From: Mobula hypostoma
Lineage: Eukaryota
Length of the DNA: 64,000 nucleotides
Direction: 5' to 3'
Assembly (NCBI RefSeq): GCF_963921235.1
Contig: NC_086099.1
Coordinates: 117,180,001-117,244,000, forward strand
A program made the position numbers and the translations under genes. Of this stretch, positions 3,312-62,824 are shown one piece after another; the stretch's first letter is position 1; each line of letters opens with the position of its first letter. Below the pieces are notes generated by a model. The model did no database searches. It was not told the DNA's origin and was given only the letters and a program-made list of their open reading frames with translations.

Positions 3312-3320
3312 TTAGCTTTC
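3312..3320 (-). CDS. Gene B terminal coding exon (ES*)
   Basis: Acceptor ttacttttcag|GAA AGC TAA, phase 0, after a 296-nt intron; candidate minus-strand AATAAA at 3008-3003 and 2605-2600. Confidence 0.65.
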   Translation of the reverse strand, partial: ES

Positions 3321-6300
3321 CTGAAAAGTAATCTGTAACAACAAGCTGCTGGAGTAACTCAGTGGGTCAAACAACATCTGCACATCTGCATCAGGACCAA
3401 AAATGCAGAGGGGAGATTTCCAGTATAATCGGAGAGTGAGACTGGGTGACTGGTGGATCGAGAGAGGCAGGCAGGTTGAGCCAGGTAGGGGAGGGGTACA
3501 GCTGGAGTAGATGACCGATAGAGAGAACAAACAAAGAACCGGGGGTTGGGGGGGAGAGGAGGCAGCTATCTTCTTGAATTTTCAATTGCTATTGTAATGT
3601 TAGGCATGATGCTTACCCATCCTCCTGAACTTTGAATCCATGGCAGCAGCTTTGTATTGATAAAGTTTGTCAACGCAACTTTGACTGTAGGAAGCAATTC
3701 AGGCACTTCCTTAGAAATGTTCATTCCCACAACGATAGCGATTCCAAGGAGATTTATCTCAGGACCCAACTGTTGAGCCTGTGCCTGCAGTTCAGGGGTG
3801 TTGCATAGCCCAGTCACCATCCCCGAAAACACTTCAGAAGCCTTGTAAAAATAATACAATTTTTAATGTAAAACAATTATTAAACAGAATTGCAACTCAG
3901 CACATGCCATTCTAGATATCCAATTTCTTTACCTTTCAGAAGCCATTCCATTTCTGAACAGTTGTCCTCATTTAGATAAGCACTGTATTTTACCGAGTGC
4001 ATTTTGACACATCTTCAGTATTTATTTCTTTTCCCCGTTTGAAATTTTGTTTTCCTCATAAATAAACTATAACAGTCTTCTTGAGTAAGGAAGAATAGGA
4101 ACAAGAGAGAGAGAAATTGAAAGAGAATGATGGAAATGGGACCTGAATTATGGAACTGCAGTAATTGGGTTCCTCCTCTATTGTCTGAACTGTAGATTAG
4201 AACATTCATGTAATGTTAAATCAACATTTTTTCACCAATATTGTGACAATAGCAATGCTCACCTTTCCAGATATACTGACTGAGCTGCTGAGTTTTTCCA
4301 TCATTTTTATTTTAGATTTCCAACACAGAAACACAGAAAACCTACAGCACAATATAGCACTTCGGGCCACAAAGCTGTGCCGAACATGTCCCTTCCTGAG
4401 AAATTACCTGGTGTTACCCATAGCCCTCTATTTTTCTGAGCTTCATGTACTTGCCCAGGAGTCTTCTAAAAGACCCTATCGTATCCACCTCCAGCACTGT
4501 TGCCAGCAGCCCATTCCACTCTCTCACCACTCTGCGTAAAAAACTCACCCCTGACATCTCTGTACCTACTTCAAGCATCTTAAAACTGTGCCCTCTCGTG
4601 CTAGCCATTTCAGCCCTGGGAAAAAGCCTCTGACTATCCACACGATCAATGCCTCTCATCATCTTATACACCTCTAACAGGTCACCTCTCATCCTCCGTC
4701 ACTACAAGGAAAAAAAGGCCGAGTTCACTCAACCTATTCTCATAAGACATGCTCCCCAATCCACGCAACATACTTGGAAGTCTCCTCTGCACCCTTCCTA
4801 TGGTTTCCACATCCTTCCTATAGTGAGGCAACCAGAACTAAGCACAGTACTCCAAGTGGGGTCTGACCAGGGTCCTATATAGCTGCAACATTACCTTGCG
4901 GTTCCCAAACTCAATCCCACGACTGATGAAGGCCAATGCACCATATGCTTTCTTAACCACCGAGTCAACCTGCGCAGCAGCTTTGAGTGTCTTATGGACC
5001 CAGACCCCAAGATCACTCTGATCCTCCACAAGAGTGTGACCATCAATACTATACTCTGCCATCATATCTGACCGACCAAAATGAACCACCTCACACTGAT
5101 CTGGGTTGAACTCCATCTGCCACTTCTCAGCCCAGTTTTGCTTCCTATCAACGTCCCGCTGTAACCTCTGACAGCCCTCCACACTATCCACAACACCCCC
5201 AATCTTTGTGTCATCAGCAAAATTTACTAACCCATCCTTCCTCTTCCTCATCCAGATCATTTATAAAAATCATGAAGAGAAGGGGTCTCGGAACAGATCC
5301 CTGAGGCACGCCACTGGTCACCGACCTCCATGCAGAATATGACCCATCTACAACCACTCTTTGCCTTCTCTGGGCAAGTCAGTTCTGGATCCACAAAGCA
5401 ATGTCCCCTTGGATCCCATGCCTCCTTACTTTCTCAATAAGTCTTGCATGGGGTACCTTGTCAAATGCCTTGCTGAAACCATTTACACTACATCTATGGC
5501 TCTACCTTCAACAATATGTTTAATCACATCCTCAAAAACTTCAATCAGGCTCGTAACGCACAATCTGCCTTTGACAAAGCCATGCTGACTATTCCTAATC
5601 ATATTATGCCTCTCCAAATGTTCATAAATCATGCCTCTCAGGATTTTCTCCATCAACTTACCAACCACTGCAGTAAGACTCACTGATCTATAATTTCCTG
5701 GGCTATCTCTACTCCCTTTCTTGAATAAGGGAACAATATCTGCAACCCTCCAATCGCCCGGAACCTCTCCCATCCCCATTGAGGATACAAAGATTATCAC
5801 CAGAGGCTCAGCAATCTCCCTCTTCGCCTCACACAGTAGCCTGGGGTACACCTTGTCTGGTCCCGGTGACTTATCCAACTTGATGCTTTCCAAAAGCTCC
5901 AGCACATCCTCTTTCTTAATATCTACATGCCCAAGCTTTTCAATCCACTGTAAGTCATCCCTACAATCTCCAAGGTAGTTTTCCCTAGTGAATACTGAAG
6001 CAAAGTACTCATTAAGTACCTCTACTATCTCCTCTGGAAATACCTACAGTTTCTTTTTGGATTTTCATAATTTCTTTCCTCCTATGTGATTAGAACAGCA
6101 AACTTCTTTCACTCTCATTCCACTGAATGGAAAAAAGTGCTGAAACCATACAAGGAGCTTGCAAGCAAGTTCCATAAAGTTAGGCAAGTGCTGTAAATGA
6201 CAGCATATCACTATATAGGCAGTAACAACCTACTTGTTATATCTCTTTGCACTTCACATCTCATCCAGAAACCATTACTCTACAGTTGGAGACTACCATC

Positions 6301-9300
6301 CATTGAAGTTATTCATAATATTTTAAAGACTAGTTATCTCAGTTACAAATCTAGAAGAGTGCTCGGGATGCAGAGGACACCATTATTACCTGGGGATGGG
6401 AGAAAAGACTGCCAAATTCAATTGGGACTGAGCTACATCAGCCAGAGACCACAAGATACAGGAGCAGAATTAGGACATTGGGCCCATCAAATCTGCTCCG
6501 CCGTTCCATTGTGGCTGATTTATCTCTTTGATGCCCCGATTAATCAAGAATCTATTAACCTCCGCTTTAAATACACGCAATGACTTGGTCTCCAAAGCTG
6601 CCTGTGGCAAAAAATTCCACAGATTCATTACACTGGCTGCAGAGATTTTTTTCTCATCTCTGTTCTAAATGGATCTCCTATTCTGAGACTGTGTCCTAGA
6701 CTCCCCCATTATAGGAAACACTCTCTCCACATCCACTCTGTCCTGGCTTTTCAATATTCCATAGGTTTCAATGAGATCCCCCTCATTCTTCTAAAATACA
6801 GCAAGTACAGGCCCAGAGCCATCAAACACACACGTTAACCCTTTCATTCCCGAATCATTCTTGTGAACTTCCTCTGCATCTGGATGCTTTCCAGTGCAGC
6901 ACTCCCAAGTGTGGTCTGAACAATCTCTTATAAAGCCTCAGCATTACATCATTGTTTTTTTCATTCTAGACCTCTCGAAATGAATGCGACCAATGCAGCT
7001 TCTTCATCACAGACCAAACCTACAAGTTAACCTTTAGGGGTGGATGAACTGAAAGTGCAGATTGTTATTAATGATTATGATATAGTTGGGATCACAGAGA
7101 CATGGCTCCAGGGTGACCAGGGATGGGAGCTCAACGTTCAGGGATATTCAATATTCAGGAGGGATAGACACGAAGGAAGGGGAGGTGGGGTGGCGTTGCT
7201 GGTTAAAAAAGAGATTAACGCAATAGAAAGGAAGGACATAAGCCGGGAAGATGTGGAATCGATATGGGTAGAGCTGCGTAACACTAAGGGGCAGAAGACG
7301 CTGGTGGGAGTTGTGTACAGGCCACCTAACAGTAGTAGTGAGGTCGGAGATGGTATTAAACAGGAAATTAGAAATGTGTGCAATAAAGGAACAGCAGTTA
7401 TAATGGGTGACTTCAATCTACATGTAGACTGGGTGAACCAAATTGGTAAAGGTGCTGAGGAAGAGGATTTCTTGGAATGTATGCGGGATGGTTTTTTGAA
7501 CCAACATGTCGAGGAACCGACTAGAGAGCAGGCTATTCTGGACTGGGTTTTGAGCAATGAGAAAGGGTTAATTAGCGATCTTGTCGTGAGAGGCCCCTTG
7601 GGTAAGAGTGACCATAATATGGTGGAATTCTTCATTAACATGGAGAGTGACGTAGTTAATTCAGAAACAAAGGTTCTGAACTTAAAGAGGGGTAACTTTG
7701 AAGGTATGAGACGTGAATTAGCTAAGATAGACTGGCAAATGACACTTCAAGGATTGACGGTGGATATGCAATGGCAGGCATTTAAAGGTTGCATGGATGA
7801 ACTACAACAATTGTTCATCCCAGTTTGGCAAAAGAATAAATCAAGGAAGGTAGTGCACCCGTGGCTGACAAGAGAAATTAGGGATAGTATCAATTCCAAA
7901 GAAGTAGCATACAAATTAGCCAGAGAAAGTGGCTCACCTGAGGACTGGGAGAAATTCAGAGTTCAGCAGAGGAGGACAAAGGGCTTAATTAGGAAGGGGA
8001 AAAAAGATTATGAGAGAAAACTGGCAGAGAACATAAAAACGGACTGTAAAAGCTTTTATAGATATGTAAAAAGGAAAAGACTGATAAAGACAAATGTAGG
8101 TCCCCTGCAAACAGAAACAGGTGAATTGATTATGGGGAGCAAGGACATGGCAGACCAATTGAATAATTACTTTGGTTCTGTCTTCACTAAGGAGGACATA
8201 AATAATCTTCCAGAAATAGTAAGGGACAGAGGGTCCAGTGAGATGGAGGAACTGAGCGAAATACATGTTAGTAGGGAAGTGGTGTTAGGTAAATTGAAGG
8301 GATTGAAGGCAGATAAATCCCCAGGGCCAGATGGTCTGCATCCCAGAGTGCTTAAGGAAGTGGCCCAAGAAATAGTGGATGCATTAGTGATAATTTTTCA
8401 AAACTCGTTAGATTCTGGACTAGTTCCTGAGGATTGGAGGGTGGCTAATGTAACCCCACTTTTTAAAAAAGGAGGGAGAGAGAAACCGGGGAATTATAGG
8501 CCGGTTAGCCTAACGTCGGTGGTGGGGAAACTGCTGGAGTCAGTTATCAAGGATGTGATAACAGCACATTTGGAAAGCGGTGAAATGATCGGACAAAGTC
8601 AGCATGGATTTGTGAAAGGAAAATCATGTCTGACGAATCTCATAGAATTTTTTGAGGATGTAACTAGTAGAGTGGATAGGGGAGAACCAGTGGATGTGGT
8701 ATATTTGGATTTTCAAAAGGCTTTTGACAAGGTCCCACATAGGAGATTAGTGTGCAAACTTAAAGCACATGGTATTGGGGGTAAGGTATTGGTGTGGGTG
8801 GAGAATTGGTTAGCAGACAGGAAGCAAAGAGTGGGAATAAACGGGACCTTTTCAGAATGGCAGGCGGTGACTAGTGGGGTACCGCAAGGCTCAGTGCTGG
8901 GACCCCAGTTGTTTACAATATATATTAATGACTTGGATGAGGGAATTAAATGCAGCATCTCCAAGTTTGCGGATGACACGAAGCTGGGTGGCAGTGTTAG
9001 CAGTGAGGAGGATGCTAAGAGGATGCAGGGTGACTTGGATAGGTTGGGTGAGTGGGCAAACTCATGGCAGATGCAATTTAATGTGGATAAATGTGAAGTT
9101 ATCCACTTTGGTGGCAAAAATAGGAAAACAGATTATTATCTGAATGGTGGCCGATTAGGAAAAGGGGAGGTGCAACGAGACCTGGGTGTCATTATACACC
9201 AGTCATTGAAAGTGGGCATGCAGGTACAGCAGGCGGTGAAAAAGGCGAACGGTATGCTGGCATTTATAGCGAGAGGATTCGAGTACAGGAGCAGGGAGGT

Positions 9301-12300
9301 ACTACTGCAGTTGTACAAGGCCTTGGTGAGACCACACCTGGAGTATTGTGTGCAGTTTCGGTCCCCTAATCTGAGGAAAGGCATCTTTGCCATAGAGGGA
9401 GTACAAAGAAGATTCACCAGATTGATTCCTGGGATGGCAGGTCTTTCATATGAAGAAAGACTGGATGAACTGGGCTTGTACTCGTTGGAATTTAGAAGAT
9501 TGAGGGGGGATCTGATTGAAACGTATAAGATCCTAAAGGGATTGGACAGGCTAGATGCGGGAAGATTGTTCCCGATGTTGGGGAGGTCTAGAACGAGGGG
9601 TCACAGTTTGAGGATAGAGGGGAAGCCTTTTAGGACCGAGGTTAGGAAAAACTTCTTCACACAGAGAGTGGTGAATCTGTGGAATTCTCTGCCACAGCAA
9701 ACTGTTGAGGCCAGTTCATTAGCTATGTTTAAAAGGAAGTTAGATATGGCCCTTGTGGCTACAGGGGTCAGGGGGTATGGAGGGAAGGCTGGGTTCTGAG
9801 TTGGATGATCAGCCATGATCATAATAAATGGCGGTGCAGGCTCGAAGGGCCGAATGGCCTACTCCTGCACCTATTTTCTATGTTTCTATGTTTCTATGAA
9901 TCTTGATCGAGTCTCAAGTCTCTTTGCATCACTGATTTTGCATTTTTCTCCCCATTTAGAAAATAGTCCATGCACTTCTCTACACTAGATTCCATCTGCC
10001 ACTACTTTTTTCCTCTCAGTCTAAGTCTTTTTGCAGATGCCTAGTTCCTCAACACCATCTGCATCTATCTTCATATCATCCGGAAACTTGGCCATAAAGC
10101 CATTGATATATAGCATGAAAAGAAGCGGTCCCAACACCGACCCCTGTGGTACACCACTACTCACCAGTAGCCAACCAGAAAGATCCCTCTTTATTCACAC
10201 AATTTGCCTCCTGCCAGTCAATCAATCCATCGAGCATCTTTCCTGTAATACCATGGGCTCTTATCTTGTTAAGAATCCTCATGTGCAGCACCTTATTAAA
10301 GGCCTTCTAAGAATCCAAGTATACAACACCTACTAATACTCCTTTGTCTATCCTACTTGTTATTGCCTCAAATAATCCCAACAGACTTTTCAAGCAAGAT
10401 TTTCCCTTAAGGAAACCATGTTGAATTTGGCCTATTTTTCATGCGCCGCTAAGTAACCCTAACAATCATCCTTAATAATGGACTCCAACATCTTACCAAC
10501 CACTGAAGTCAGGCTAATTGGTCTATAATTTCCTTTCTTTTGCCTCCCTTCCTTCTCTAAAAGCAGAGTGACATTTGAAATTTTTCTGTCCTCTGGAACC
10601 ATTCCAGAAAGATTCTTGAAAGATCATTACTAATGCCACCACAATCTCTTCAGCTACCTCTCAGAATCCTGGAGTGTAGTCTATAATTTCCTTTCTTTTG
10701 CCTCCCTTCCTTCTTTAAAAGCAGAGTGACATTTGAAATTTTTCTGTCCTCTGGAACGATTCCAGAAAGATTCTTGAAAGATCATTACTAATGCCACCAC
10801 AATCTCTTCAGCTACCTCTCAGAATCCTGGAGTGTAGTCCATCTGATCCAGGTGACTTACTTACCTTAAGACCGTTCAGCTTCCCACTTTCTCCTTAGTA
10901 ACAGCATCTACACTCACTTCTGCCCCCGATACTCTCAAATTACTGGCATTCTGCTAGTCTCTTCCACAGTGAAGACTGACGCAAAATACTTAATAAATTA
11001 GTCCATCGTTTGTTTGTCCCAATAGCTACCTCTCCCACAGCCCCTTTCCAGTGATCTGATATCCATTCTCACCTCTCTTTTGCTCTATATATAGCTGAAT
11101 AAACCTCTTTTATATTATTGGCTAGCCTACCTTAATGTTATCACATGCCATCTTGTAACAAACACCTCTTTTGCTTTTACCTTATCTTTGATTTTACCTT
11201 ATCTTTGATTTCCCTTGTCAGCCATACTTGTGACATCCTCCCTTTAGAATACCACTTCATCTTTGGGATGTATCTATCCTGCACCTTCCAAATTGCTCCC
11301 AGAATCTCCAGCCACTGCTGATCTGCCATCATTCTTGATTGTGTCCCCTTCCAATCAACTTTAGCCAGCTACTCTCTCATGCCTCTGTAATTCATTTTAC
11401 TTCACTACAATACTGATATATCTGAGTTTAACTTCTCCCTCTCAAACTGCAGAGTGAATTCTATCATTATTATCACTGTCTCCTAAAAGTTCCTTTACCT
11501 TAAGCTCCTCAAATCTAGTTCATTTCACAACACCAAATCCAGAATTGCCTTTTCCCTAGGGTGCTCAACCACAAGCTGCTCTAAAAACCCATCTTGTAGG
11601 CATTTTATCTTTTGGGATCCAGCAACAACCTGATTTTCCCAATCCACCTACATACTGAAATCCCCTATGAGTATCATAATATTACCCTTTTGACAAGCTT
11701 TCTCTATGCCCTGTTCTAATTTGTAGCTCACATACTAGCTACTGTTTGGAGGCCTGTATACAATTCCCATCAGGGTATTTTTACCCCTGCAGTTTCTTAA
11801 CTACCCACAAGAATTTTATAAGTCACCTCTTTCTAAGGATTTGATGATTTTTTTTTATAACCAATAAAGCCACCCCACCCCCTATGCCTACCTGCCTGCC
11901 CTTTTGATACAATGTGTATCCTTGGATGTTAAGCTTCCAACTATGATCTTCTTTCAACCATGGCTCAGTGATGCCCACATCTTACCTACCAATCTCTATC
12001 CGTACTACAAGATCATCTACCTTACTCCGCATACTGCATACATTCAAATAACACCTCCAGTCCTGTTTTCACCCCCCTTTTTGATTTTGGGTCCATGTTT
12101 ACACTTCAACTCACCCTACTGACATCAATTTGCCCATCCTTCCTCAGTCTCACTATACACTACATCTGGTTGTATACCAACTGCCCCATCCTCAGCCCTA
12201 TCACTCTGGCCCATCCCACCGCCAAATTAGTTTATAACCCCGCCCCCAACAGTTCAAGCAAACCAGCCGAAGCAAAAATATTGTTTCTCCCTCAGGTTCA

Positions 12301-15300
12301 GGTATAATCCATTCTTTTTGCACAGATCATACCTTCTCCAGAAGAGATCCCAATGATCCCAAAATCTGAACCCCACCCCCCACACCAATTCTTCAGCCAC
12401 ACATTCATCTGTTAAGTCATCCCAATCTTTCTCTCACTGGCACATGGCACAGGCAGCAATCCAGAGATTACTAGCCTGGATGTCCTGCTTTTCAGCTTTC
12501 AACGTAACGCCCTGAATGCTCTCTTCAGGACCTCCTCCCTTTTCCAACCTATGTTACTGGTGCCAGTACCTACTATGAATTTCAGCTGCTCTGTCTTGCT
12601 CTTTAGAATGCTATGGACTCAACTCTTGACCCTGGTACCCAGGAGGCAACATTTCATCTGGGAGTCTCTTTCACGTCTACAGAATCTTCTGACTACTCCT
12701 CTAACTATAGAACCCCTATCACTACTACACACGTCTTCTTCCCCCTCACGTTTTGAACCAGAGCCAGACTCAGTGCGAGAGACCTGACTGCTTTGGCTTT
12801 CTTCTGCTATGTCATCCCTCCCAAAAGTGTCCGAAGCAGTATACCCATTGTTGAGGGTAATGGCCACAGGGCTACTCTGCCTTGGCTGCCTATTCCATTT
12901 CCTCCTCTTGACAGTCACCCAGTTGCCTGTGTAATCTGTATGTAACTGTGTACCTTGGGTGTAACTACCTCTCTGTATGTCCCCTCTATTAACCCCTCAG
13001 CACCTTGAACAGTCTGGAGTTCATCCAGTTCCAATTCCTTGACATTGCCTGTTAGAAGCTGCAGCTGGATGGCTAGGATACTAGATGGCTAGAGCTAAAT
13101 GAGAAGGAAAGGGGAATACATGTTTAAAAATGGGGTGATAATGACAGCGAGTGCCTGTATGAGGCATAGAGAGAGAAAATACACCTCAAGGAGAACTGGG
13201 AATGAATGTAGTGTGTACTGCCAACAAAGAAGAGGTATAGATTCTCTGCAAGGGAAGTGTTGTAGGGCGAGTTTTGTTTAAGGAACATGGTCGAAAAAAT
13301 AGATATGACTGGAGGATTGGTGGGCTTTTCATTTACCTCAGAGATCTAGGCATCAAGAGACCACTATTAATTGCCCCATCTAATTCTCCTTGAGGAAGTG
13401 CAAGTGAGTTTTTTTCCTCAGTGCCACTGAACAGAGAGTTCAAGGATTAAGCCCCGGTAATGTAGAAGGACCAGGGATTCATTTCTAAATCAGGTTTGTG
13501 ACAAACTTAAGTGGAGCTGCAGATAATGTTCAAATGCAACTGCTTGACGATGTATCAACATCTCCATTCCTGACTCCGTGATGGAATAAAGGTAACTGAT
13601 GAAGCAGTTAAAGTTGCCTATGCCCAGGACACTGTCCTGCATCACACACAGCAGGGCAGGCAGCATCTATGGAAAAGAGCAAACAGATGACATTCTGGGC
13701 TGAGCCCCTATGAAGGGTCTAGGCTCAAAATGACGACTGTCACTCTTTTCCACAGATGCTCCGACCTGTTGAGTTCCTCCTGCACTTTGTGTGTATGTTG
13801 CTCTGGATTTCCAGCGTCTGCAGATTTTCTCGTATTTCTGTTCTTTGTTTGCATATAGGGTTTTCGATCTAAAACATCAAACACTACCTGAGTGCCTTCG
13901 ACAATTCTGTTTACTTCTGTAATCTCTGAAATTTGGAAGAACAAGGATATCTCATAGAAATTTGCTAATTTCTTAAGGTTCTACAGGCTACCTTTACGAA
14001 TGATGTCTTTCTGAAGATTCAAATTTCACTTATTAAATCTATTGATTACAGATCAGTAACATAGTTAAAGGAATGGTAAATTTGCTTTGTGTAGCACATT
14101 CTTGACTGTACCACCACTGGCTTCAACATCAAAACATTCCTTTTAGATCATCTCCCTCCAATGAGCTGTTAACTCATAAGTAGTGACAGCGATTGAGAAT
14201 TGACAAACTCTTGACCATTTTCCCCCCAGTTCACCTGTACTATAGAAAACAGGATAATTATCACATTGTTAATGCTGGTGAATGATTGCCACATAAACCT
14301 ATCAGCTGGCAAGTGATGTGTTGTCTAAACTAAGGTGTTGGCTGCTTAGTTTGAATTATGCAACACATTAAATTTTCTGCATATTCTAAGGTTCTGTATG
14401 CTACTTTAATATCTACATACCTGATCCTTTGCCAGCTCACGCAACTTGGGTTGAAGATTTTTCACATGTGGCTGAATTATTTGATTGTATTCATCTCCAA
14501 GCCTCCGCAGACACTGAGCTACCTTGAGAACCTCTTCATCCCCTGCAACACACAAAAAAAACAGAAATGAACAAGAGAAATGAATACATCCTCTCCTCAT
14601 CAAGAAGGGGATTGATTTCAATGTGTTGTGTCAGGAACCAACTTATCACGGCAGTCAATTACTCCAGAATAAGGTAGTATTGCGTATTAAACACAAGAGA
14701 TTCTGTAAATGCTGGAAATCCAAAGCAACAAAGAAAAACACTAGAGGAACTCATTAGGTCAGGCAGCATCTATGAAGGCGAATAAAAAGTCGACATTTCA
14801 AGCCAAGACCCTTCATCATGACTGGAAAAGAAGGGGGCTAGAATCCAAATTGGGGGGGGAGGGGGGAGAAGGGGAAGAAGTATGAGCTAGAAGGTGATAG
14901 GTGATGCCAGATGAGGGGCAAGGTAGCTGGGTGTGGTTGGGGTATGAAGTGAGAAGCTGGGAGGTGATAGGTGGAAAAGGTAAAGGCTGAAGAAGGAATC
15001 TGACAGGAGAGGTTAGTGGACCATAGGAGAAGGGGAAGTGGGGGGGGGGGGGCACCAGGAGGAGGTGATGGGCAGGTAAGAAGGGAAGAGATAAGACTGG
15101 TGCCGGAATGGGGAATGGAAAAGAGAGAAGGGGAGTGGGTGAGAAATTACTGGAAGTTAGAGAAATCAATGTTCATGCCATCACGTTGGAGGCTACCCAG
15201 ATGAAATGAGATGCTTCTGCTTCAGCTGAGTGTAGCCTCATCGTGACAACAGAGGTGGCCATGAACCGAACGGGAATGGAAAGCAGAATTAAAATGGGTG

Positions 15301-18300: not shown

Positions 18301-21300
18301 AAGGTGTTGTTCCTCCAACCTGAGTGTGGCTTCATCTTTACAGTAGAGGAGGCCATGGATAGACATATCAGAATGGGAATGGGACGTGGAATTAAAATGT
18401 GTGGCCACTGGAAGATCCTGCTTTCTCTGGCGGACAGAGCGTAGGTGTTCAGCGAAACAATCACCCAGTCTGCATCGGGTCTTGCCAATATATAGAAAGC
18501 CACACCGGGAGCACCGGATGCAGTATATCACCCCAGCCGACTCACAAGTGAAGTGTCGCCTCACCTGGAAGGACTGTCTGGGGCCCTGAATGGTGGTAAG
18601 GGAGCAAGTGTAAGGGCATGTGTAGCACTTGTTCCGCTTACAAGGATAAGTGCCAGGAGGGAGATCAGTGGGGAGGGATGGGGGGTTGGGGACAAATGGA
18701 CAAGGGAGTCGCATAGGGAGCAATCCCTGCGGAAGGGGGGGGGGAGGGAAAGATGTGCTTAGTGCTGGAGGTGGCGGAAGTTACGGAGAATTATATGTTG
18801 GACCCGGAAGCTGGTGGGGTGGTTAGTGAGGACAAGTGAACCCTATTCCTATTCCTAGTGGGGTGGCGGGAGGATGGAGTGACAGCAGATGTACGTGAAA
18901 TGGGGGAGATGTGTTTGAGAGCAGAGTTGATGATGGAGGAAGGGAAGCCCCTTTCTTTAAAAAAGGACATCTCCTTCGTCCTGGAATGAAAAGCCTCATC
19001 CTGAGAGCAGATGCGGCGGAGATGGAGGAATTGTGAGAAGGGGATCGCATTTTTGCAAGAGATAGGGTGAGAAGAGGAATAGTCCAGATAGCTGTGAGAG
19101 TCAGTAGGCTTATTGTAGACATCAGTGGATAAGCTGTCTCCAGAGATAGAGACAGAAAGATCTAGAAAGGGGAGGGAGGTGTCGGAAATGGACCAGGTAA
19201 ACTTGAGGGCAGGGTGAAAGTTGGAGGCAAAGTTAATGAAGTCAACGAGCTCAGCATGCGTGCAGGAAGCAGCACAAATGCAGTTGTCCATGTAGCAAAG
19301 GAAAAGTGGGGGACAGATACCAGAATAGGATTGGAACATAGATTGTTCCACAAAGCCAACAAAAAGGCAGGCATAGGTAGGACCCATACGGGTGCCCATA
19401 GCTACACCTTTAGTTTGGAGGAAGTGGGAGGAGCCAAAGGAGAAATTATTAAGAGTAAGGACTAATTCCGCTAGATGGAGCAGAGTGGTGGTAGAGGGGA
19501 AATGATTAGGTCTGGAATCCAAAAAGCAGAGAGCTTTGAGACCTTCCTGATGGGGGATGGAAGTATATAGGGACTGGACATCCATGGTGAAAATAAAATC
19601 ATTGAAAAGTTTCAGAGCGTGAGAAATGTCACGAACATAGGTAGGAAGGGATTGAACAAGGGGGGATAAAACAGAGGTATGCAGAAATAAGTTCAGTGGG
19701 GCAGGAGCAAGCTGAGACAATGGGTCTACCTGGACAGGCAGGTTTGTGGATCTTGGGTAGGAGATAGAAATGGGAAGTGCAGGGTGTGGGATCTTGCTCT
19801 TGATCAGCTGAGTAAGTGGACCAAGGAATGGTAAATAGAGTCTTCTGGTAAGATGATGATATGCTCTGCCTCAGTGGCCTGTCCGGGTCCAACCAAAGGG
19901 GGATGCTTTGTCTTGCATGTCTTTCTTTTTTTTCCCCCACAATCACAAAAGACTCTGCTAGATACTAAGAACATCAAGTACTGCAGGACTTTCCCATCAC
20001 CGAGCTGCTTGATACAAGGATGGAGCTGGACTTGGGTATCATTGCTGTGTTGTCATCTGGACTTCTCGTGTACCTTTGGATGGTGCATGGTGCAAGTGAC
20101 TGTCTTGGACATTTTTATTGTGATCGCAAGACCCTGTTTTACATTAGTAATAGAATACAAGTCCAGTTCAGTGGTTCATTCATGAGACTGACGGCAGGGG
20201 GGAGCTGCATTCCCTTGTTTGTAGCAAAGACAAGGCCCACGCTGTCGAGTCACCTGTTGTAGCCAACCAGGAGAGGTGGCACAGAGGCAGTGTGGTAAAG
20301 CCTCGGTGGGCTACACTGGGTTGTGAGCTGGCCCCTCCCATCTCTGCTAAGCATCATCCCCCACCCACCGGTGTTCGCTCAGTGGACAGACAGGCTAATC
20401 CAGGCCAATTTAACATGAATTCTACAGTCGAACCATTCAGAGACTTAGACTATATATGTTTTCCTTGGTTCTGNNNNNNNNNNNNNNNNNNNNNNNNNNN
20501 NNNNNNNNNNNNNNNNNNNNNNNNNNNNNNNNNNNNNNNNNNNNNNNNNNNNNNNNNNNNNNNNNNNNNNNNNNNNNNNNNNNNNNNNNNNNNNNNNNNN
20601 NNNNNNNNNNNNNNNNNNNNNNNNNNNNNNNNNNNNNNNNNNNNNNNNNNNNNNNNNNNNNNNNNNNNNNNNNNNNNNNNNNNNNNNNNNNNNNNNNNNN
20701 NNNNNNNNNNNNNNNNNNNNNNNNNNNNNNNNNNNNNNNNNNNNNNNNNNNNNNNNNNNNNNNNNNNNNNNNNNNNNNNNNNNNNNNNNNNNNNNNNNNN
20801 NNNNNNNNNNNNNNNNNNNNNNNNNNNNNNNNNNNNNNNNNNNNNNNNNNNNNNNNNNNNNNNNNNNNNNNNNNNNNNNNNNNNNNNNNNNNNNNNNNNN
20901 NNNNNNNNNNNNNNNNNNNNNNNNNNNNNNNGGTTTCAGATGCCCAAGACACACCGTACGAATAGCACACCAAATGAGCTTGTCATGATGGCGTCCCAGC
21001 GACTCCACCAGGAGTTAAGGGCGCAGACGGACACACACACGGACACACACACACACCCCACCATATATACTCCGGGCAGTCTGCTACATGCTTTGCAGCT
21101 TGGCCCTGGAGGGCGCTGTTTCATGTGGCTGTATTCATGTTGAACTTGAACTTAATTCTGATAAGTACAAGATGCTGCATTTTGAAAGGTTAAACCTAGG
21201 CAAGATTTTCACAGTGAATGGCAAGGCCCTAGGAGTGCTGTACAACAGAATGAGTAAGAAGAATGTTTATAGTTCACTGAAAGTGGAGTCACAGATAGAG

Positions 21301-24300
21301 AAAAAACACAGATACTGCCCGACTTGCTGAGTTCCTAAAGTGTTTTGTGCGCGTTGTTACAGATTGCAGCTTTTGGGATGGTGGCCGTCAGAAGCTTGAG
21401 CATTAAGTATAAGATTTGGGAAGCCATGGTGCAGTGTACGAGATGCTGGCAAGACTGACTGGGAGTACCGTGTTCTGTCTTGGCTGCCTTGCTATAGAAA
21501 AGATGTTATTAAGCTGGAAAGAGTGCTGAAAAGGTTTACTCCAGCAGGACTTATGAACAGTCGACTTTATTCCTTGGAGTACAGGAGATCCTACAAAGTT
21601 GTACAAAATCATGAGGGGCATAGATAGAATGAAAGCACTCGCTCCTCCCTCCAAGGCTGGGGAATTAAGAACTAGAGGGCGTAGGGTTAAGGTGAGAGAG
21701 GAAAGATTTAAGAGAAATTTGTGGTGTACCTTTTTATTTACAAAAAGAGCGGCAGCTACGTGGTATCAGCTGCCAGAGGAAGTGGCTGAGGTAGCTACAA
21801 TGACTTGTGAAAGACACTTGCACAACTACATGGAATGGAAAAGGTTAGAAGCTTACGGGCCAAACCACTGGGGTTAGCATGGATGTGGCTGCTCGCTTCC
21901 ATGGGCCAGCTGGGCTGCAGGCGCAGATCTGTGTGTCTACTGTAAACATCCACATCACATCTATGCAAATAAAAACAGCACAGTCTCTCCCAGGTCCATT
22001 GTATAAAGGAAGGAAGGAGTTGCTTAGAAAAGTGCAACGTTCAGTAATTATATTTTCCATTTTGTAGACCAACTCAAACTTGAGGTAGCATTTGAAGATC
22101 TTTAAGATCTGAAGTGCATTGCTTCAACATAGAGTATAACAAACTTCTTCTTGAAAGCAGGAATGGCTGCACAAATCAAAACTTGCCTGTTCTCAAGAAA
22201 TAGTGACACCACAATCTACTGCATCCTAGTCAGGAACTTGCGCAGTTATTCCTAGCCACATATACAGGGTACAATAAGGACACAAGAAACGCAGCGGCCA
22301 TTTGGTCCCCTTGAGCCTGCTGCACTATTTGACACACTTTATCTCATTTTCACATACTTGCCTGGTTCCTATAATTCGCCAATTTCCCCAAAAACGAGAT
22401 GTCCATCAATCTTGGTCTTCAATGTTCTGGGTAGAAAATTGAGGATTCACAGCTTTTTAACAGAAGTGCTTCTTCATTTCAATTTTAAAGAGGGTGCACC
22501 TTATCCTGAGACCTCAATTCCAAATTCTCCAGGAAGCAAGTATCCTCTCAATATTAACCTTTCAAGATGGGCAGTATCTTAAAGAAAAGCTGGAAATTCT
22601 GGAAATACAATCGTCCCTCGGCATCCGCGGGGGATTGGTTCCAGGGCACCCGCGNNNNNNNNNNNNNNNNNNNNNNNNNNNNNNNNNNNNNNNNNNNNNN
22701 NNNNNNNNNNNNNNNNNNNNNNNNNNNNNNNNNNNNNNNNNNNNNNNNNNNNNNNNNNNNNNNNNNNNNNNNNNNNNNNNNNNNNNNNNNNNNNNNNNNN
22801 NNNNNNNNNNNNNNNNNNNNNNNNNNNNNNNNNNNNNNNNNNNNNNNNNNNNNNNNNNNNNNNNNTCTTCTGGGAACGCTGATGCTGCCTCGTCATCAGC
22901 CGATGCCAATTCTCCTGTGATCTTTAGGTTCTTGAGGCTGTAGCACTTTACATAGCTAGCCAGCCATCCCTTACTAGCCTTAAACTCCTTCCTCTCGCTC
23001 ACAAGTAGCGAGGCGAACAACACTCAAACAATGAGTGCTGGAGAGAGACTGAGGATCTGTGAAATGGTGGGAGGCTACAGCAAGGTATGCCTACACATCA
23101 CTTCATTCGCGTGGATTCAGCGTAGTGCTCAGCGCGCGGCAAATTCAAGTTTTGCTTTTTGGAACTTCCTGGAATTTTTTGTCGATATTTTCGATCCGCA
23201 GTTGGTTGAATCCGTGGATGCGGAGGACCATCTGTAGTTAGATCATGAAGCAATTGTAAACAGAGAGAAGCAGTTCCAGCATTTTCTGTTTTATTTCAGA
23301 TCTGCATCATCTGCTATTCGTTTCGCTTTATCTTCAGGATCTTACATGTTCAGCAATATCATTTATTATTTTTCTGAACTCCTGCAGAGTGCAAGCTCAA
23401 GGTAACCTTGATCTCATGAAAAATCTCGAAGACCATCATATTCTTCCTTAAATACAGAGGCCAACAATATCACCAAATTCTTGTGGAGCTGTGCCAAAAG
23501 GTACCTATTGATAAGCATTCCATTCCTCTTGCAAAAAAGGCCAATATGCCAGTCTTTTAATAAATACCTGAATTTTAATTTTAATGCTTGTGCGACCAAG
23601 ATCTCCGCTAACATCAGCTGTTAATAGGCTTACAATGTGCGCCCTCGATTTCCTATTTTTTGATTTGTATTCATTGTGTATAAACAACATTTCGCACCCC
23701 TGTAAATTCCTCACTTTTAGTTCGGATTCAGCTTCAGCTATTTTTTTGTGCATACTTATGGGAATTCCTTCAACTGTCTTTTATTTCTTCCTCAGCTATC
23801 ACATTTTTAGCCTAGTTTCTCATTACATCTGCTCCTTTTAAGTTTTTTCCCCCAATACTTTGCTGGTTTCTAAAGTTTTTCTAATCTTTAAGCATGCCAT
23901 TGTTATTCACAAAATAATTCAGCCTTTTCTTTCTTTCTAACACTACTCTTAACGCCTTTAGTTAGGCACTTCTTTCTTGTTAATATTTATGAAATATTAA
24001 ACATTGCTGTTGGTCATCTACTGTCACACACTTTAATTTAAAGTCCCTGCCCACCTTAGTCAACACTCAATATGACAAAACTTTTATCGTCAACTCTCTG
24101 TAGTCTAAAAGTGGTTCATCTTATTTCTGGCCCACTCATATCGCATGAAAGTTAATCCTGTCCTCAGTACAGATTAGTTAAGTGCCATCAAGTCGTTGAC
24201 TCATGGCGACCCTATGGATAGTTGCCCTAAATGGGTTTCGATACACGCAAAGGCAGCTCATCGGAGATCACGTTGCAATAAAGCTGTCCTTATTGTGTCC

Positions 24301-27271: not shown

Positions 27272-27352
27272 AGTGCGCCGAACTTGCAATGTGCCCGCTT
27301 CAAAGAAGAAGGAAGTTACTGCACCGCCGCCGTTCTTCCTCTGTGAAACATG

Positions 27353-30464: not shown

Positions 30465-30485
30465 TCACTCAATTTTAATATTTGC
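30465..30485 (-). CDS. BCL2L15: Gene A terminal coding exon (ANIKIE*)
   Basis: Strong acceptor atttcttttccctcag|GCAAATATTAAAATTGAGTGA, phase 0, followed by unique UTR-like sequence and AATAAA at 29606-29601. Confidence 0.65.
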   Translation of the reverse strand, partial: ANIKIE

Positions 30486-48400: not shown

Positions 48401-51400
48401 TTTGAGAGGTTAGTCATGGCTGGAATCAATTCCTGCCTCAGCAAGGACCTCAACCCACTGTAATTCGCCTATCTCCACAATAGATGAATGGCAGATGTGT
48501 TCTCACTGGCTCTCCACATGGCTTTGGATCACCTGGACAACACTAATACCTATGTCAGGATGCTGTTTATTGACTATAGCTCAGTGTTTAACACCATCAT
48601 TTCTACAGTCCTGATTGATAAGCTACAGAACCTGGGCCTCTGTACCTCCCTCCCTCTGCAATCAGATCTTTGACTTCCTAACCAGAAGGCCACAATCTGT
48701 TCAGATTGGTGATAATATCTCCTCCTCGCTGATGATCAACACTGGTGCACCTCAGGGATGTGTGCTTAGCCCACTGCTCTACTCTCTCTGTACCCATGAT
48801 TGTGTGGATAGGCATAGCTCAAATATCATCTATAAATTTGCTGATGATACAACCATTGATGACAGAATCTCTGATAGAAACATAGAAACATAGAAAATAG
48901 GTGCAGGAGTAGGCCATTCGGCCCTTCGAGCCTGCACCGCCATTTATTATGATCATGGCTGATCATCCAACTCAGAACACCGCCCCAGCCTTCCCTCCAT
49001 ACCCCCTGATCCCCGTAGCCACAAGGGCCATATCTAACTCCCTCTTAAATATAGCCAATGAACTGGCCTCAACAGTTTCCTGTGGCAGAGAATTCCACAG
49101 ATTCACCACTCTCTGTGTGAAGAAGTTTTTCCTAATCTCGGTCCTAAAAGGCTTCCCCTCTATCCTCAAACTGTGACCCCTCGTTCTGGACTTCCCCAAC
49201 ATCGGGAACAATCTTCCTGCATCTAGCCTGTCCAATCCCTTTAGGATTTTATATGTTTCAATCAGATCCCCCCTCAATCTTCTAAATTCCAACGAGTACA
49301 AGCCCAGTTCATCCAGTCTTTCTTCATATGAAAGTCCTGCCATCCCAGGAATCAATCTGGTGAACCTTCTTTGTACTCCCTCTATGGCAAGGATGTCTTT
49401 CCTCAGATTAGGGGACCAAAACTGCACACAATACTCCAGGTGTGGTCTCACCAAGGCCTTGTACAACTGCAATAGTACCTCCCTGCTCCCGTACTCGAAT
49501 CCTCTCGCTATAAATGCCAGCATACCATTCGCCTTTTTCACCGCCTGCTGTATCTGCATGCCCACTTTCAATGACTGGTGTATAATGACACCCAGGTCTT
49601 GTTGCACCTCCCCTTTTCCTAATCGGCCACCATTCAGATAATAATCTGTTTTCCTATTTTTGCCACCAAAGTGGATAACTTCACATTTATCCACATTAAA
49701 TTGCATCTGCCATGAATTTACCCACTCACCCAACCTTTCCAAGTCACTCTGCATCCTCTTAGCATCCTCCTCACAGCTAACACTGCCACCCAGCTTCATG
49801 TCATCCGCAAACTTGGAGATGCTGCATTTAATTCCCTCATCCAAGTCATTAATATATATTGTAAACAACTGGGGTCCCAGCACTGAGCCTTGCGGTACCC
49901 CACTAGTCACCGCCTGCCATTCTGAAAAGGTCCCACTTATTCCCACTCTTTGCTTCCTGTCTGCTAACCAATTCTCCATCCACATCAATACCTTACCCCC
50001 AATACCGTGTGCTTTAAGTTTGCACACTAATCTCCTGTGTGGGACCTTGTCAAAAGCCTTTTGAAAATCCAAATATACCACATCCACTGGTTCTCCCCTC
50101 TCCACTTTACTAGTTACATCCTCAAAAAATTCTATGAGATTCGTCAGACATGATTTTCCTTTCACAAATCCATGCTGACTTTGTCCGATGATTTCACTGC
50201 TTTCCAAATGTGCTGTTATCACATCTTTGATAACTGACTCCAGCAGTTTCCCCACCACCGACGTTAGGCTAACCGGTCTATAATTCCCTGGTTTCTCTCT
50301 CCCTCCTTTTTTAAAAGTGGGGTTACATTAGCCACCCTCCAATCCTCAGGAACTAGTCCAGAATCTAACGAGTTTTGAAAAATTATCACTAATGCATCCA
50401 CTATTTCTTGGGCTACTTCCTTAAGCACTCTAGGATGCAGACCATCTGGCCCTGGGGATTTATCTGCCTTCAATCCCTTCAATTTACCTAACACCACTTC
50501 CCTACTAACAAGTATTTCGCTCAGTTCCTCCACCTCACTGGACCCTCTGTCCCTTACTATTTCTGGAAGATTATTTATGTCCTCCTTAGTGAAGACAGAA
50601 CCAAAGTAATTATTCAATTGGTCTGCCATGTCCTTGCTTCCCATAATCAATTCACCTGTTTCTGTCTGTAGGGGACCTACATTTGTCTTTACCAGTCTTT
50701 TCCTTTTTACATATCTATAAAAGCTTTTACAGTCAGTTTTTATGTTCCCTGCCAGTTTTCTCTCATAATCTTTTTTCCCCTTCCTAATTAAGCCCTTTGT
50801 TCTCCTCTGCTGAACTCTGAATTTCTCCCAGTCCTCAGGTGAGCCACTTTCTCTGACTAATTTGTATGCTTCTTCTTTGGAATTGATACTATCCCTAATT
50901 TCCCTTGTCAGCCATGGGTGCACTACCTTCCTTGATTTATTCTTTTGCCCAAGATTACTACCTTTGCGGTCCTTTTTCTCAACTCCCTTCCTAGCTCCCT
51001 ATATTCTCCTTTCAGGACCTCATCCCTTTTCCTACCTATGTCATTGGTACCTATATGTACCACGACATCTGGCTCCTCACCCTCCCACTTCAGGATATCT
51101 TGGACACGATCAGAAATATCCCGGACCCTGGCACCAGGGAGGCAAACTACCATCCGGGTCTCTGGACTGCGTCCACAGAATCACCTATCTGACCCCCTTA
51201 CTATCGAGTCCCCTATCACAACTGCCCTCCTCTTCCTTGCCCTACCCTTCTGAGCTACAGGGCCAGACTCTATGCCGGAGGCATGGCCACTGTCGCTTCC
51301 CCCGGGTAAGTTGTCCCCCCCAACTGTACTCAAACAGGAGTACCTATTGTTAAGGGGCACAGCCACCGGGGTACTCCCTATTACCTGACTCTTCCCCTTC

Positions 51401-52838
51401 CCCCTCCTAACCGTGACCCACTTGTCTGCCTCCTGTGGCCCCGGCGTGACCACCTGCCTTCCACTCCTCTCTATCAACTCCTCACTCTCCCTGACCAGAC
51501 GAAGGTCATCGAGCTGCAGCTCCAGTTCCGTAACGCGGTCCCTTAGGAGCTGCATCTCGATGCACTTGGCACAGATGTGGACGTCCGGGAGGCTTGGAGA
51601 CTCCAGGGCCTCCCACATCCGACACCGAGAACAGCAAACTGCCCTCACACTCATACTGCCCCTCTCCTCAAATAACAACAGAAAATGAATGTCAAACCTT
51701 CCTCGCCTCGCCCGCTTCCGCCTAAGCCCGTTGAGCCAAAGCCCTTAAGCCTTGATGGTGACAAGGAGATGTTCAGGAGATATAACAGCTACTTGAGTGG
51801 TGCCATAGCAACAACTTTAGTAAGACCAAAGGACTGATTTGTGGACTAGAAAGAGTAAGACGAGGGAACACAAACCAATTCTCAAAGAGTGATCAGAAGT
51901 AGAGAGAATGAGCAATTTCAAGTTCCTGGGTGTCAGTATTTTTGAGGACCTAGCCTATCCTAACAGTTATAAAGAAGGCAAGACAGCGGAGGCATTAGGA
52001 GTTTGAGGAGATTTGGTTTGTCACCTAAGACACGAAAACTTCTACAGATGTACTATGGAGAGCATTCTGACCGGCTTCATCGTTGTCTGGTATGGGGGTG
52101 GGGTATACTGCACAGGATTAAAATAAACTGCAGGAAGTTGTAAAATTAGTCAGCTCCATCATGGGTACGAGCCTCAGTAGTATCCAAGACATCTGCAAGG
52201 AGCAGTGCCTCAGAAAGTCTGCATGCATCATTAAGGACCCCCACCACCCAGGAAATGTCCTCTTCTCACTGCTACCATTGGGAAGGAGGTACAAAAGCCT
52301 GAAAGCACACACCCAATGATACAGGAACAGCTTCCTCCCCTCTGCCATCCGCTTTCTTAATGGACATTGGACCCATGAACACTACCTCACTAATTTTTAA
52401 ATTTCTGTTTTTGCACTACTTATTTTAATTAAACTGTTTATTATACAGACTGTATATATTCTAACTGTAATTCAGGTTTTCCCCTAAGTTTATTATGTAT
52501 TGCACTGCACTGCTGCTGCAAAGTTACAACTTTCACAACATATGCCAGTGATAATAAACCTGATTCTGAAGTACGGGCTAGAACTTTGGGCATAAATGCT
52601 GGGCTGAACAACGGGTAGAGTATGAGACTTCTCTCAAGAATTGACAATTAGGCAGTTCCACAGGGTAAAGTATCAGGTAGCAGACAAATTTCACTCTGTC
52701 TAGAAGTTTACCTTCATCACATTCTGAGGCCTCCCCAAGGCATCGGAAGCCGGTGAAAGAATCATCTTCTTCTTCTTCCCCCAGCAGAATATTCACCAGG
52801 TATTCAGTCTGTTCCTTAAATGATGCAGTCACTTCCAT
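30465..52838 (-). CDS. BCL2L15: Gene A: BCL2L15/BFK-like Bcl-2 family protein, 4 coding exons (52838-52712, 42185-42061, 38015-37800, 30485-30465), 162 aa
   Basis: Hand-spliced protein: [100 protein letters not shown]...[22 protein letters not shown]. All introns are GT-AG with matching phases 1/0/0. The N-terminus resembles the BFK start as I recall it (TFEEQTECIVNTLL). BH3 is LREMGD, BH2 is WVSNSNGW, and there is no TM segment. Confidence 0.85.
30820..31300. mobile_element. Tc1/mariner-like non-autonomous repeat; an inverted copy lies at ~62990-63432
   Basis: tactgtgcaaaagtcttaggcac-type termini; shared internal sequence between the two copies. Confidence 0.65.
32767..32870. repeat. Short ~16-17 bp tandem repeat (gggagaaggtgccctt)n
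   Basis: About 6 degenerate units visible. Confidence 0.8.
33060..36272 (+). mobile_element. 5'-truncated CR1 LINE with nonsense mutations, interrupted by a solo LTR
   Basis: RT motifs split by stops; (ttctatg)n tail; host sequence rejoins as ...attcccca|ggctgctcc. Confidence 0.95.
33330..34741 (+). mobile_element. Solo LTR (1412 bp), TGTCA...TGACA, 5-bp TSD CCCCA
   Basis: TSD at 33325-33329 and 34742-34746; AATAAA at ~34658; internal tandem repeats. Confidence 0.88.
37800..38015 (-). CDS. BCL2L15: Gene A coding exon 3 (216 nt, ends in BH2 Gly-Trp)
   Basis: Acceptor ctccaaag|; encodes ACELFSST...[12 protein letters not shown]; donor TGG|GTAAGT at the intron position typical of Bcl-2 BH2 (GW|). 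Confidence 0.88.
38620..41690 (+). mobile_element. Cluster of old nested CR1 fragments (gene A intron 2)
   Basis: Multiple [11 protein letters not shown] and KFAD remnants. Confidence 0.75.
42061..42185 (-). CDS. BCL2L15: Gene A coding exon 2 (BH3 exon, 125 nt)
   Basis: Acceptor ...tgatttag| after a T-rich tract; encodes [20 protein letters not shown]...HAKDQ; donor CAG|GTAGGT. Confidence 0.88.
42310..43410 (+). mobile_element. Old CR1 fragment
   Basis: Degenerate RT C-terminal motifs. Confidence 0.7.
43632..43915 (+). mobile_element. tRNA-derived SINE (second copy at 54790-55078)
   Basis: A-box ggccaagtgg and B-box-like ttcgagac; near-identical body at 54790. Confidence 0.85.
44347..48375 (-). 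mobile_element. Near-full-length RTE-clade LINE with (GAT)n tail and 10-bp TSD ACTCATATCT
   Basis: APE motifs [24 protein letters not shown] and NQIDFI; RT motifs FIDYTEAFD and FCYLGS; TSD at 44337-44346 and 48376-48385. Confidence 0.93.
46562..47257. mobile_element. Solo LTR (696 bp), TGT...ACA, 4-bp TSD TAGT (Gypsy-like), inside the RTE
   Basis: TSD at 46558-46561 and 47258-47261; the RTE frame NQIDFITI|NQRFRN is restored on removal. Confidence 0.85.
48876..51752 (-). mobile_element. Young CR1 of the same family as 7040-9898: 5' region + ORF1 (zinc finger, SGNH esterase) fused by internal deletion to ORF2 RT
   Basis: ORF1 motifs [24 protein letters not shown] and HIGTND; ORF2 nearly identical to the 7040 copy, with a 1-nt frameshift at ~50310; deletion junction at ~50949; short tgat duplication at the ends. 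Confidence 0.95.
52712..52838 (-). CDS. BCL2L15: Gene A coding exon 1 (127 nt, phase-1 end)
   Basis: ATG at 52838; encodes [20 protein letters not shown]...SECDE; donor AAG|GTAAAC. Confidence 0.85.
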
Positions 52839-61860: not shown

Positions 61861-62076
61861 GGAAATATGCTGGCACCGAAATACATAAGACATTTAAAAT
61901 AGGGATATATATGTGGGGTAAAAAGGGAATTTAAAAATGAATGCATATGGAGAGAGGAATGAGATTTGTTTAGAGGGCAGATAAGCCAAATGCACTTCAA
62001 CTTCCATGAAGGAATGTTTGAATCAATTAGCGAATGAACATGTTTTTTTTTACAGTGAATTTCTGAAACTAAAGCA

Positions 62077-62824
62077 ATGCAGTCGCTACCTGAAGTTCAT
62101 GCCACCAGCCACCTTGGTTGCTCAGAAAACATTGTGAATTTGAACTTTAGCAAACTCCAGCCAAGAAGAGTGGTCGAGGTCTACATCAAACGCAGCTTAA
62201 GTCTAAAGGAAGGTGGTGCCAACAACAAGATAATGAAGTGGAGTTCTCTTCCAGGAAATGTCTCACCAAAAAACATGAAGTGCAAGGAGGGAGCTGGCCT
62301 GAACATTCCATGGAAACATTGCAGGGGTCAAGAAAAAATGCAAAGTGAAACAGAGGGTCAAAAGCATAAAGATAAAGCGATGCCTTCCAGCACCAGCTCT
62401 TCAAACATTGAGTCAAGTGTGGAGAAGTCACCCAGTAAGTGCAGGAGCAAAGATGGGAAAAAAGGAAGAAAGTCTCAAACCTTCTTTGGAAAAATTGTGA
62501 GTTCCCTGTGGAAAAGGAAAAGTGATGAGAAGAAATTTGATGGGCATAAAAGATTGAGAGACCCTGGGCCTCCCCTAGCTGAAAACCCCCCAGAACACAA
62601 TGGAAAACAGCACCTTGCTGGAATCCAGGAGCCACCTGGAGAGCTGCCCATCATTCACAAGCTCAAGAAAAGAAATAGCCTCCGGAGAGTGCTCTCTTTA
62701 AAGAGGAATAATTCTGAAGTTAAAGACATTGGGTTGGCTGGTCCAGGAGCCAGTAAGAGTAAGGATGTCCGACCCAGTCTGCTGGATCTCAACAGTGGAT
62801 GCAGGCCAGAAGAAAACATATCAG
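62077..62824 (+). CDS. Gene C: large first coding exon of a BNIP5(C6orf222)/BCL2L14(BCL-G)-family gene; the rest lies beyond the window
   Basis: Acceptor tgtttttttttacag| with the exon starting at 62056; ATG at 62077; 249 open non-TE codons; donor CAG|GTACGA (phase 1). Motifs RRVVEVYIKRSLSL, KSQTFFGKIVSSLWKRK, KKRNSLRRVLSLKR and RPSLLDL resemble, from memory, the basic/Ser-rich N-terminal half of BCL-G/BNIP5-type proteins. No BH3 exon is visible, so the family call is tentative. Confidence 0.6.

Follow-up and report, generated by a model that had tools for sequence, protein, structure and literature searches.

Which genes share a 64,000-nucleotide stretch of a 232-Mb chromosome of the ray Mobula hypostoma (GCA_963921235.1), and do they form an arrangement that other cartilaginous fishes have kept? 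In this whole stretch, called the window here, a sequence-only reading had proposed a cluster of three Bcl-2 family genes hidden in DNA rich in transposable elements: two tandem genes resembling BFK (BCL2L15), named A and B below, and a third, gene C, resembling BCL-G or BNIP5. We find that A and B, both on the minus strand, belong to the BCL2L15 family and that gene C, on the plus strand, is by its sequence a BNIP5 (C6orf222) family gene. It is probable that the three make up a conserved block of cartilaginous fishes in which C stands head-to-head with the tandem pair A and B, and a KLHL12-like gene follows convergently. The exon structure, motifs and layout of the cluster were as first described, and its start coordinate and the last exon of gene B have to be corrected. 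The source of the window is established by its contig record and by exon 3 of gene B, which is 100% identical to an NCBI protein.

The tandem BFK genes and their BNIP5-like neighbour

The assignment of A and B to the BFK family comes from profile, tree and structure. Among solved proteins, a profile of A and B matched human BCL2L15 (7ccl) first, over nearly its full length (E 8e-11), followed by BAX and BID. When 1.84 billion representatives were searched exhaustively by profile, 82 matched, and the 20 of these that were named by look-up fall into four groups: A-type sequences (Heptranchias, Narcine, Chiloscyllium, Scyliorhinus, Callorhinchus), B-type sequences (Heterodontus, Stegostoma, Rhincodon, Scyliorhinus, Rhinoraja, Callorhinchus), BCL2L15 of bony vertebrates (paddlefish, sturgeon, teleosts, coelacanth, caecilian) and BID, including a true shark BID. 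The others resemble, by sequence, further BFK of teleosts and mammals, BID of tetrapods and multi-domain Bcl-2 proteins. In a maximum-likelihood tree of 50 rows (LG+C20, rooted on multi-domain Bcl-2 proteins), B-type, A-type and bony-vertebrate BFK form one clade (support 92/84) and BID forms another. The A-type sequences are united with 100/99 and join bony-vertebrate BFK with 95/91, to the exclusion of the B-type. A grouping with BCL2L15 rather than BID, which the sequence-only reading had expected of both paralogs, was thereby recovered, and for gene B the fold agrees. Its AlphaFold2 model (pLDDT 85.8, pTM 0.80) is an all-helical bundle with the Bcl-2 homology 3 (BH3) motif inside helix 28-57, and the best match in the PDB is the human BFK crystal structure 7CCL (TM-score 0.70-0.71), with other Bcl-2 proteins next. 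The gene B product (P0001) and orthologs of both types score above the Pfam BID cutoff and at or near that of Pfam Bcl-2; A-type orthologs pass BID and one of them also passes Bcl-2. A and B are thus small soluble Bcl-2-fold proteins with a pseudo-BH4 helix, a BH3 and a BH2 and with neither the NWGR motif nor a membrane anchor, the fold being taken from the AlphaFold2 model for gene B only and from the Pfam matches of its orthologs for gene A.

Both genes are intact and consist of four exons with intron phases 1/0/0, and all eight exons are bounded by GT-AG sites. Gene A extends over 22 kb of DNA rich in transposable elements with an unbroken open reading frame of 162 codons. Gene B encodes 148 residues; its spliced translation is 100% identical to the protein that NCBI calls "BAX-like", and its coding sequence spans positions 15-27271, a distance of 27,257 nt that equals the gene length on record. 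The exons are as follows.

52712-52838, minus strand: gene A exon 1, ATG at 52838; 42 codons plus 1 nt, phase 1 donor GTAAAC
42061-42185, minus strand: gene A exon 2 (BH3 exon), LREMGD at 42136-42153; entered in phase 1, left in phase 0 at AKDQ/GT
37800-38015, minus strand: gene A exon 3, 72 codons, helices alpha3-alpha8; BH2 ends NSNGW/GTAAGT
30465-30485, minus strand: gene A exon 4, ANIKIE and stop; acceptor CCCTCAG, frame closes
27187-27271, minus strand: gene B exon 1, ATG at 27271; 28 codons plus 1 nt, 100% in tblastn with P0001
27200-27211, minus strand: caspase-type site LETD of gene B, within exon 1
27186-14543, minus strand: gene B intron 1, 12.6 kb, containing both assembly gaps
14421-14542, minus strand: gene B exon 2 (BH3 exon), LRRLGD at 14493-14510; ends AKDQ/GT
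3617-3841, minus strand: gene B exon 3, 75 codons; BH2 ends SSGGW/GTAAGC
15-29, minus strand: gene B exon 4, EKIL and stop; the true last exon
62077-62824, plus strand: gene C first coding exon, residues 1-249 of its product (P0003) plus 1 nt; phase 1 donor

The two genes share the details that had drawn attention to them. Both BH3 exons, with the canonical motifs LREMGD (A) and LRRLGD (B) where they had been placed on the minus strand, end in AKDQ directly before the GT donor, and the following exons open with alanine after AG. The BH2 motifs WVSNSNGW (A) and WIQSSGGW (B) run up to a GTAAG donor. As claimed, neither protein has NWGR or a membrane anchor, the translations ending 4-6 residues past the GW. 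The strong divergence of the paralogs also stands: the full proteins are 33% identical (E 1.7e-21) and the exon 3 products 36% (E 8e-16). The first exon of gene A was located through a weak similarity to the N-terminus of the Heterodontus protein; its product, a pseudo-BH4-like helix, aligns with the N-termini of A-type orthologs. The fourth exon of gene A was found by DNA homology to Narcine after motif searches had missed it; the Narcine exon 4 region aligns to 30355-30624 with 72.7% identity (E 1e-37). The earlier start of the cluster near position 3312, and with it the earlier end of gene B, was wrong. Besides the span on record, the ends of gene B orthologs, in which GGW is followed by E-K/N-I/L, match the exon at 29-15.

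Gene C begins 9.2 kb from gene A, ATG to ATG, and is transcribed away from it, as the sequence-only reading had it. Its BH3 exon and the remainder lie past the window end. The product (P0003) has 419 residues and is listed as "uncharacterized LOC134343519"; its shark orthologs P0009, P0010 and P0011 reach 44.5-53.4 bits against Pfam CF222 (PF15661, C6orf222), and orthologs are named BNIP5 or BCL2L14 in NCBI and UniProt. The proposed BCL-G/BNIP5-like character agrees with this match and with these names, and the choice of BNIP5 over BCL2L14 was made by Pfam alone, with a comparison set that holds no true BCL2L14. Gene C has a long, basic, Ser/Lys-rich N-terminal exon followed by a BH3. For the downstream part a BH3 and a BH2 had been anticipated: a putatively functional BH3 motif, ILQNVGD, is present in the C-terminal part of P0003, but a GGW-type BH2 is absent from the gene C family, which ends in QDTCWQ. 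In human, the BH3-bearing PXT1 is a neighbour of BNIP5 and might be a relic of such a pair. Pfam scans with the gene B product and with A- and B-type orthologs, at E values up to 1-10, returned BID, Bcl-2, a BH3-peptide family and unrelated families below threshold; a PXT1 family was not among them.

The arrangement recurs in other species. In Callorhinchus, A is followed by B in the same orientation with 7.4 kb between the genes, the same tandem is found in Narcine and Mobula, and the A and B genes of Scyliorhinus torazame carry adjacent locus tags on one 224-kb scaffold. The presence of the pair in a chimaera, a shark and rays implies that the duplication predates the chimaera-elasmobranch split, i.e. 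that it was in place in crown Chondrichthyes. Gene A is under purifying selection (dN 0.27, dS 0.57, dN/dS 0.47 against Narcine; Z 2.77, one-sided p 0.003), and the suggestion of an old duplication held by selection is upheld by this ratio together with the tandem in the four genera. The full layout is repeated in Narcine, where C and A stand head-to-head with 244 bp between the annotated coding starts and B comes next, so at least two batoid lineages have kept the three-gene arrangement. Immediately beyond the start of the window, a convergent gene for a BTB-BACK-Kelch protein of 564 residues follows B in Mobula, as it also does in Heterodontus and Callorhinchus (L007:22597-29495); among solved natural proteins, the Kelch exons are closest to KLHL12. 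The flanks of Osmerus, Rhinatrema, Heptranchias and the downstream side in Narcine gave little or no synteny information. The idea of a linked module of BH2/BH3 regulators therefore holds as regards linkage, given the recurrence in Narcine; that the three genes would also operate as a functional module is what we infer.

Several observations weigh against this picture. The product of gene C barely reaches the Pfam CF222 cutoff (27.3 bits, cutoff 27). Approximately unbiased (AU) tests reject neither an A+B clade (p 0.062) nor B with bony-vertebrate BFK (p 0.28), and the branching order inside the BFK clade is therefore not firm. BCL2L15 of paddlefish adjoins a DCLRE1B-type gene (DRMBL/Lactamase_B_2) and a G-protein-coupled receptor (GPCR) gene, and the smelt shows the same GPCR side. 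Within 10 kb of the pair in cartilaginous fishes no such DCLRE1B-type or GPCR neighbour was found, just the BNIP5-like and KLHL12-like genes. This difference from the neighbourhood of BCL2L15 in bony vertebrates leaves room for doubt that A or B is its strict ortholog. The coding sequence of gene A overlaps the region of the Mobula gene table, yet it is absent from that table, and its exon 3 product found no match in a collection of 5.8 billion proteins (59-189 residues). Finally, at the loop site that elsewhere distinguishes the A lineage from the B lineage, gene A of Mobula carries SECD followed by Glu, a poor P1' residue, so that loss of the site is not absolute here.

Origin of the block and of the tandem pair

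Is gene C a relative of A and B or merely their neighbour? That the BNIP5-like gene simply lies beside the BFK pair, sharing with it a convergent BH3 alone and neither origin nor function, is quite possible, though we hold it to be somewhat less than an even chance. A profile-profile alignment (hhalign) of C with A and B covers just 36 columns round the BH3 (probability 34%, E 4e-4), which speaks for mere vicinity, as do the missing GGW BH2 in the gene C family and the AlphaFold2 model of gene C (pLDDT 75.8), whose fold matches are not significant (Foldseek E ~0.5, VIA Z <=6.2). In addition, the 10 kb next to the A-type gene contain no BNIP5-like exon in Callorhinchus (upstream) or Heptranchias. 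On the other hand, the head-to-head layout has been retained in Narcine, and the weak fold matches are nearly all to BCL-xL or MCL-1. Narcine gene C repeats the phases 1/0/0 in its last three exons, and, as in A and B, 11-12 residues of its BH3 exon precede the LxxxGD core. In language-model features, the C-terminal part of gene C lies beside the BCL2L14, CF222 and BCL2L15 clusters. Overall, these likenesses make kinship of C to A and B beyond the BH3 segment suggestive only. A clear Bcl-2 fold for gene C does not emerge from the insignificant fold matches, the profile alignment confined to the BH3 and a PDB sequence search that gave no match.

A second alternative concerns the age of the tandem. 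The A/B duplication could be specific to cartilaginous fishes, with A and B as co-orthologs of the single bony-vertebrate BCL2L15; the counter-proposal is that the duplication is older and that bony vertebrates have lost one of the copies. A duplication within cartilaginous fishes is a possibility that we take seriously but would not bet on. It is compatible with the AU test of the A+B clade and with the single BFK type that bony vertebrates show among the 82 matches, but the best tree joins the A-type to bony-vertebrate BFK (95/91) without the B-type, and A and B share just 33% identity.

A more far-reaching proposal, which we put forward tentatively and regard as rather unlikely as a whole, is that the ray block represents an ancestral array. 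BFK-type and BNIP5/BCL-G-type genes would have arisen from one gene with BH3 and BH2 through local duplication, at a time before the vertebrate genome doublings or close to them. Bony vertebrates would then have scattered or lost members of the array, leaving BCL2L15, BNIP5 and BCL2L14 on three human chromosomes, and the B-type would be a caspase-switched BFK paralog that was lost there. In human, BCL2L15 lies at 1p13.2, BNIP5 at 6p21.31, BCL2L14 at 12p13.2 and KLHL12 at 1q32.1; if these positions are correct, the ray block has no single human counterpart. If true, such an array would give the atypical Bcl-2 proteins a common origin and provide a natural comparison system.

State of gene A, identity of gene B and surroundings

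Gene A appears to be unannotated in Mobula. Could it be dead or unexpressed, leaving gene B as the sole functional copy? We consider this improbable. Its absence from a gene table that covers its 3' half and the missing match for a product containing exon 3 would fit, as would the first codon of exon 4, which encodes Ala and not the Glu of the orthologs. However, 162 intact codons distributed over four exons with GT-AG sites throughout, retained key residues of BH3 and BH2, the constraint measured against Narcine and the similarity of the exon 4 surroundings argue for a functional gene, and A-type orthologs are annotated in five other species. A candidate last exon of gene A at 37516, encoding KNVRRPN, was rejected; it lies within a remnant of a long interspersed nuclear element and is without ortholog support.

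Two further observations concern the ends of A-type genes. Around the last exon of gene A, about 270 nt (30355-30624, minus strand), including the intron end and the start of the 3' untranslated region (UTR), are 72.7% identical between Mobula and Narcine. This similarity extends far beyond what the 21 coding bases would account for and may mark an element conserved for regulation or as part of the 3' UTR. In Narcine, the A-type model is extended at its N-terminus by 60 residues, with exons beginning 244 bp away from the ATG of the BNIP5-like gene (L002:10001-10681), and the orthologous exon lacks the start codon used there in other species. The extension could reflect a bidirectional promoter shared by the two genes or else an error of modelling; no counterpart was found in the window.

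That gene B is the cartilaginous-fish BID is hardly credible and was ruled out, provided that the root of the tree is not badly misplaced: NCBI names its whale-shark and zebra-shark orthologs BID, and gene B scores above the Pfam BID cutoff with an LETD site ahead of its BH3, but a separate true shark BID of 198 residues with the site IQTD/G groups with tetrapod BID (98/91), and the B-type proteins fall on the BFK side of the tree with BFK as the best fold match of gene B. The shark BID (P0074, Hemiscyllium/Chiloscyllium) ends in NTGGWQNIH, a BH2-type GGW with a BFK-like tail that the tetrapod BID sequences in the set do not have; this would fit a common ancestor of BID and BFK with both BH3 and BH2. 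Two proteins of 153-163 residues (P0071, P0084; BH3 LRKIGDDF and LAQIGDDF) form a long-branched sister group of BID in the tree.

Directly upstream of the start of gene B lies a GC-rich minisatellite (27354-28272, plus strand) with units of 30 and 59 bp in about 32 and 16 copies, which contains the GC-box-like CCCCGCCCC. The gene table places a single-exon product of 342 residues, with no Pfam match, on it (about 27350-28378, plus strand); this open reading frame is probably spurious. The window has a G+C content of 43.6%, decayed reverse-transcriptase open reading frames are abundant in the introns of its genes, and an Rfam search of it gave no match. An element of about 2 kb occurs twice in inverted orientation with 97% identity, at 7824-9793 in gene B intron 2 and at 48984-50952 in gene A intron 1, which points to a recently active transposon. 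Two gaps interrupt the assembly.

20474-20931, no strand: assembly gap 1, within gene B intron 1
22655-22865, no strand: assembly gap 2, within gene B intron 1

Both gaps are intronic and no BFK-like coding sequence was found in their flanks, so no reading frame hinges on them. Only the physical joining of gene B exon 1 to exons 2-4 spans the gaps, and the joining of exon 1 to exon 2 is backed by the scaffold, the NCBI model and an equal exon 1 in the Heterodontus and Narcine orthologs.

The loop site and comparison with known Bcl-2 relatives

Human BFK is latent in a BID-like manner and has been proposed to act once caspase cleavage frees its BH3 (PMC8814693). Five B-type sequences cover the loop ahead of the BH3, and each has an aspartate there within a caspase-type motif (LETD, LECD, LDVD). 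Bony-vertebrate BFK (LETD, IETD, LQSD, VEAD and others) and shark BID (IQTD) have it too. Of five A-type sequences covering the loop, four show Glu or no acidic P1 residue in this column. The AlphaFold2 model of gene B shows no helix in the LETD loop (residues 17-27), and its confidence is lowest there. Taken together with the work on human BFK, the retention of the aspartate in B and its frequent absence in A suggest that B is caspase-switched and A controlled differently. Full-length A and B would be latent, with the N-terminal helix covering the core by analogy with human BFK and BID. Predicted cleavage at LETD could then turn B into a caspase-switched BH3 donor, A would probably be regulated otherwise, its lineage having largely lost the loop aspartate, and gene C may supply a BNIP5-type BH3 protein. 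The analysis establishes the gene structures, their family placement, conservation, selection and linkage; activation by caspases, the partners bound and a possible joint control of the three genes are inferred.

The proteins belong to known families, and RefSeq already contains B and C, though their names there are of little help; gene A alone is missing from the Mobula table. Public names of the three genes are inconsistent, ranging from BAX-like, BID, BID-like, BCL2L15 and BCL2L14 to uncharacterized. In full-text searches, no paper turned up that connects BCL2L15 to BNIP5, or BFK to cartilaginous fishes, and a survey of Bcl-2 family evolution mentions neither BFK nor BCL-G; the three-gene layout is apparently undescribed. 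BFK, BCL-G and BNIP5 are the least understood Bcl-2 relatives, and the evolutionary conservation of BCL-G is an open question according to a 2023 review (PMC10244440). With two BFK paralogs retained for so long and distinct at the residue of the presumed caspase switch, cartilaginous fishes offer a natural experiment on whether BFK acts as BID does, and a fixed BNIP5-type neighbour with matching intron phases leads to a concrete, testable hypothesis on the origin of the atypical members.

How do the ray genes compare with the proteins they resemble? Gene C is like BNIP5 and BCL-G in its match to Pfam CF222, in the long N-terminal exon and in the BH3 motif of its C-terminal part. It does not have the GGW BH2 of BCL-G, and at about 410-450 residues the gene C family is shorter than the 648 positions of a Pfam model that is based on the longer mammalian BNIP5. 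The BH3 of mammalian BNIP5 blocks BAK and resembles that of BCL-G (bioRxiv 10.1101/2022.07.24.499430). BID resembles A and B in its latent Bcl-2 fold, the caspase site ahead of the BH3 (a putative one in gene B), the helix alpha5-alpha8 region with the NFIN motif and the Pfam BID score, but it forms a separate clade, has a longer loop and is present in cartilaginous fishes as a gene of its own. The closest likeness is to BFK (7CCL), in length (about 150-165 residues), in the succession of pseudo-BH4 helix, loop, BH3 (LRxxGD) and BH2 (W..GGW and a few residues), in lacking NWGR and a membrane anchor, and in its four coding exons, where the intron typical of the Bcl-2 family comes directly behind the Trp of BH2. 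BFK is a single-copy gene, whereas rays hold a tandem pair with just about 24-27% identity to mammalian BFK. Their neighbours are BNIP5-like and KLHL12-like where paddlefish BFK has a DCLRE1B-type gene, and the loop aspartate of BFK, largely lost in the A lineage, has been kept in gene B.

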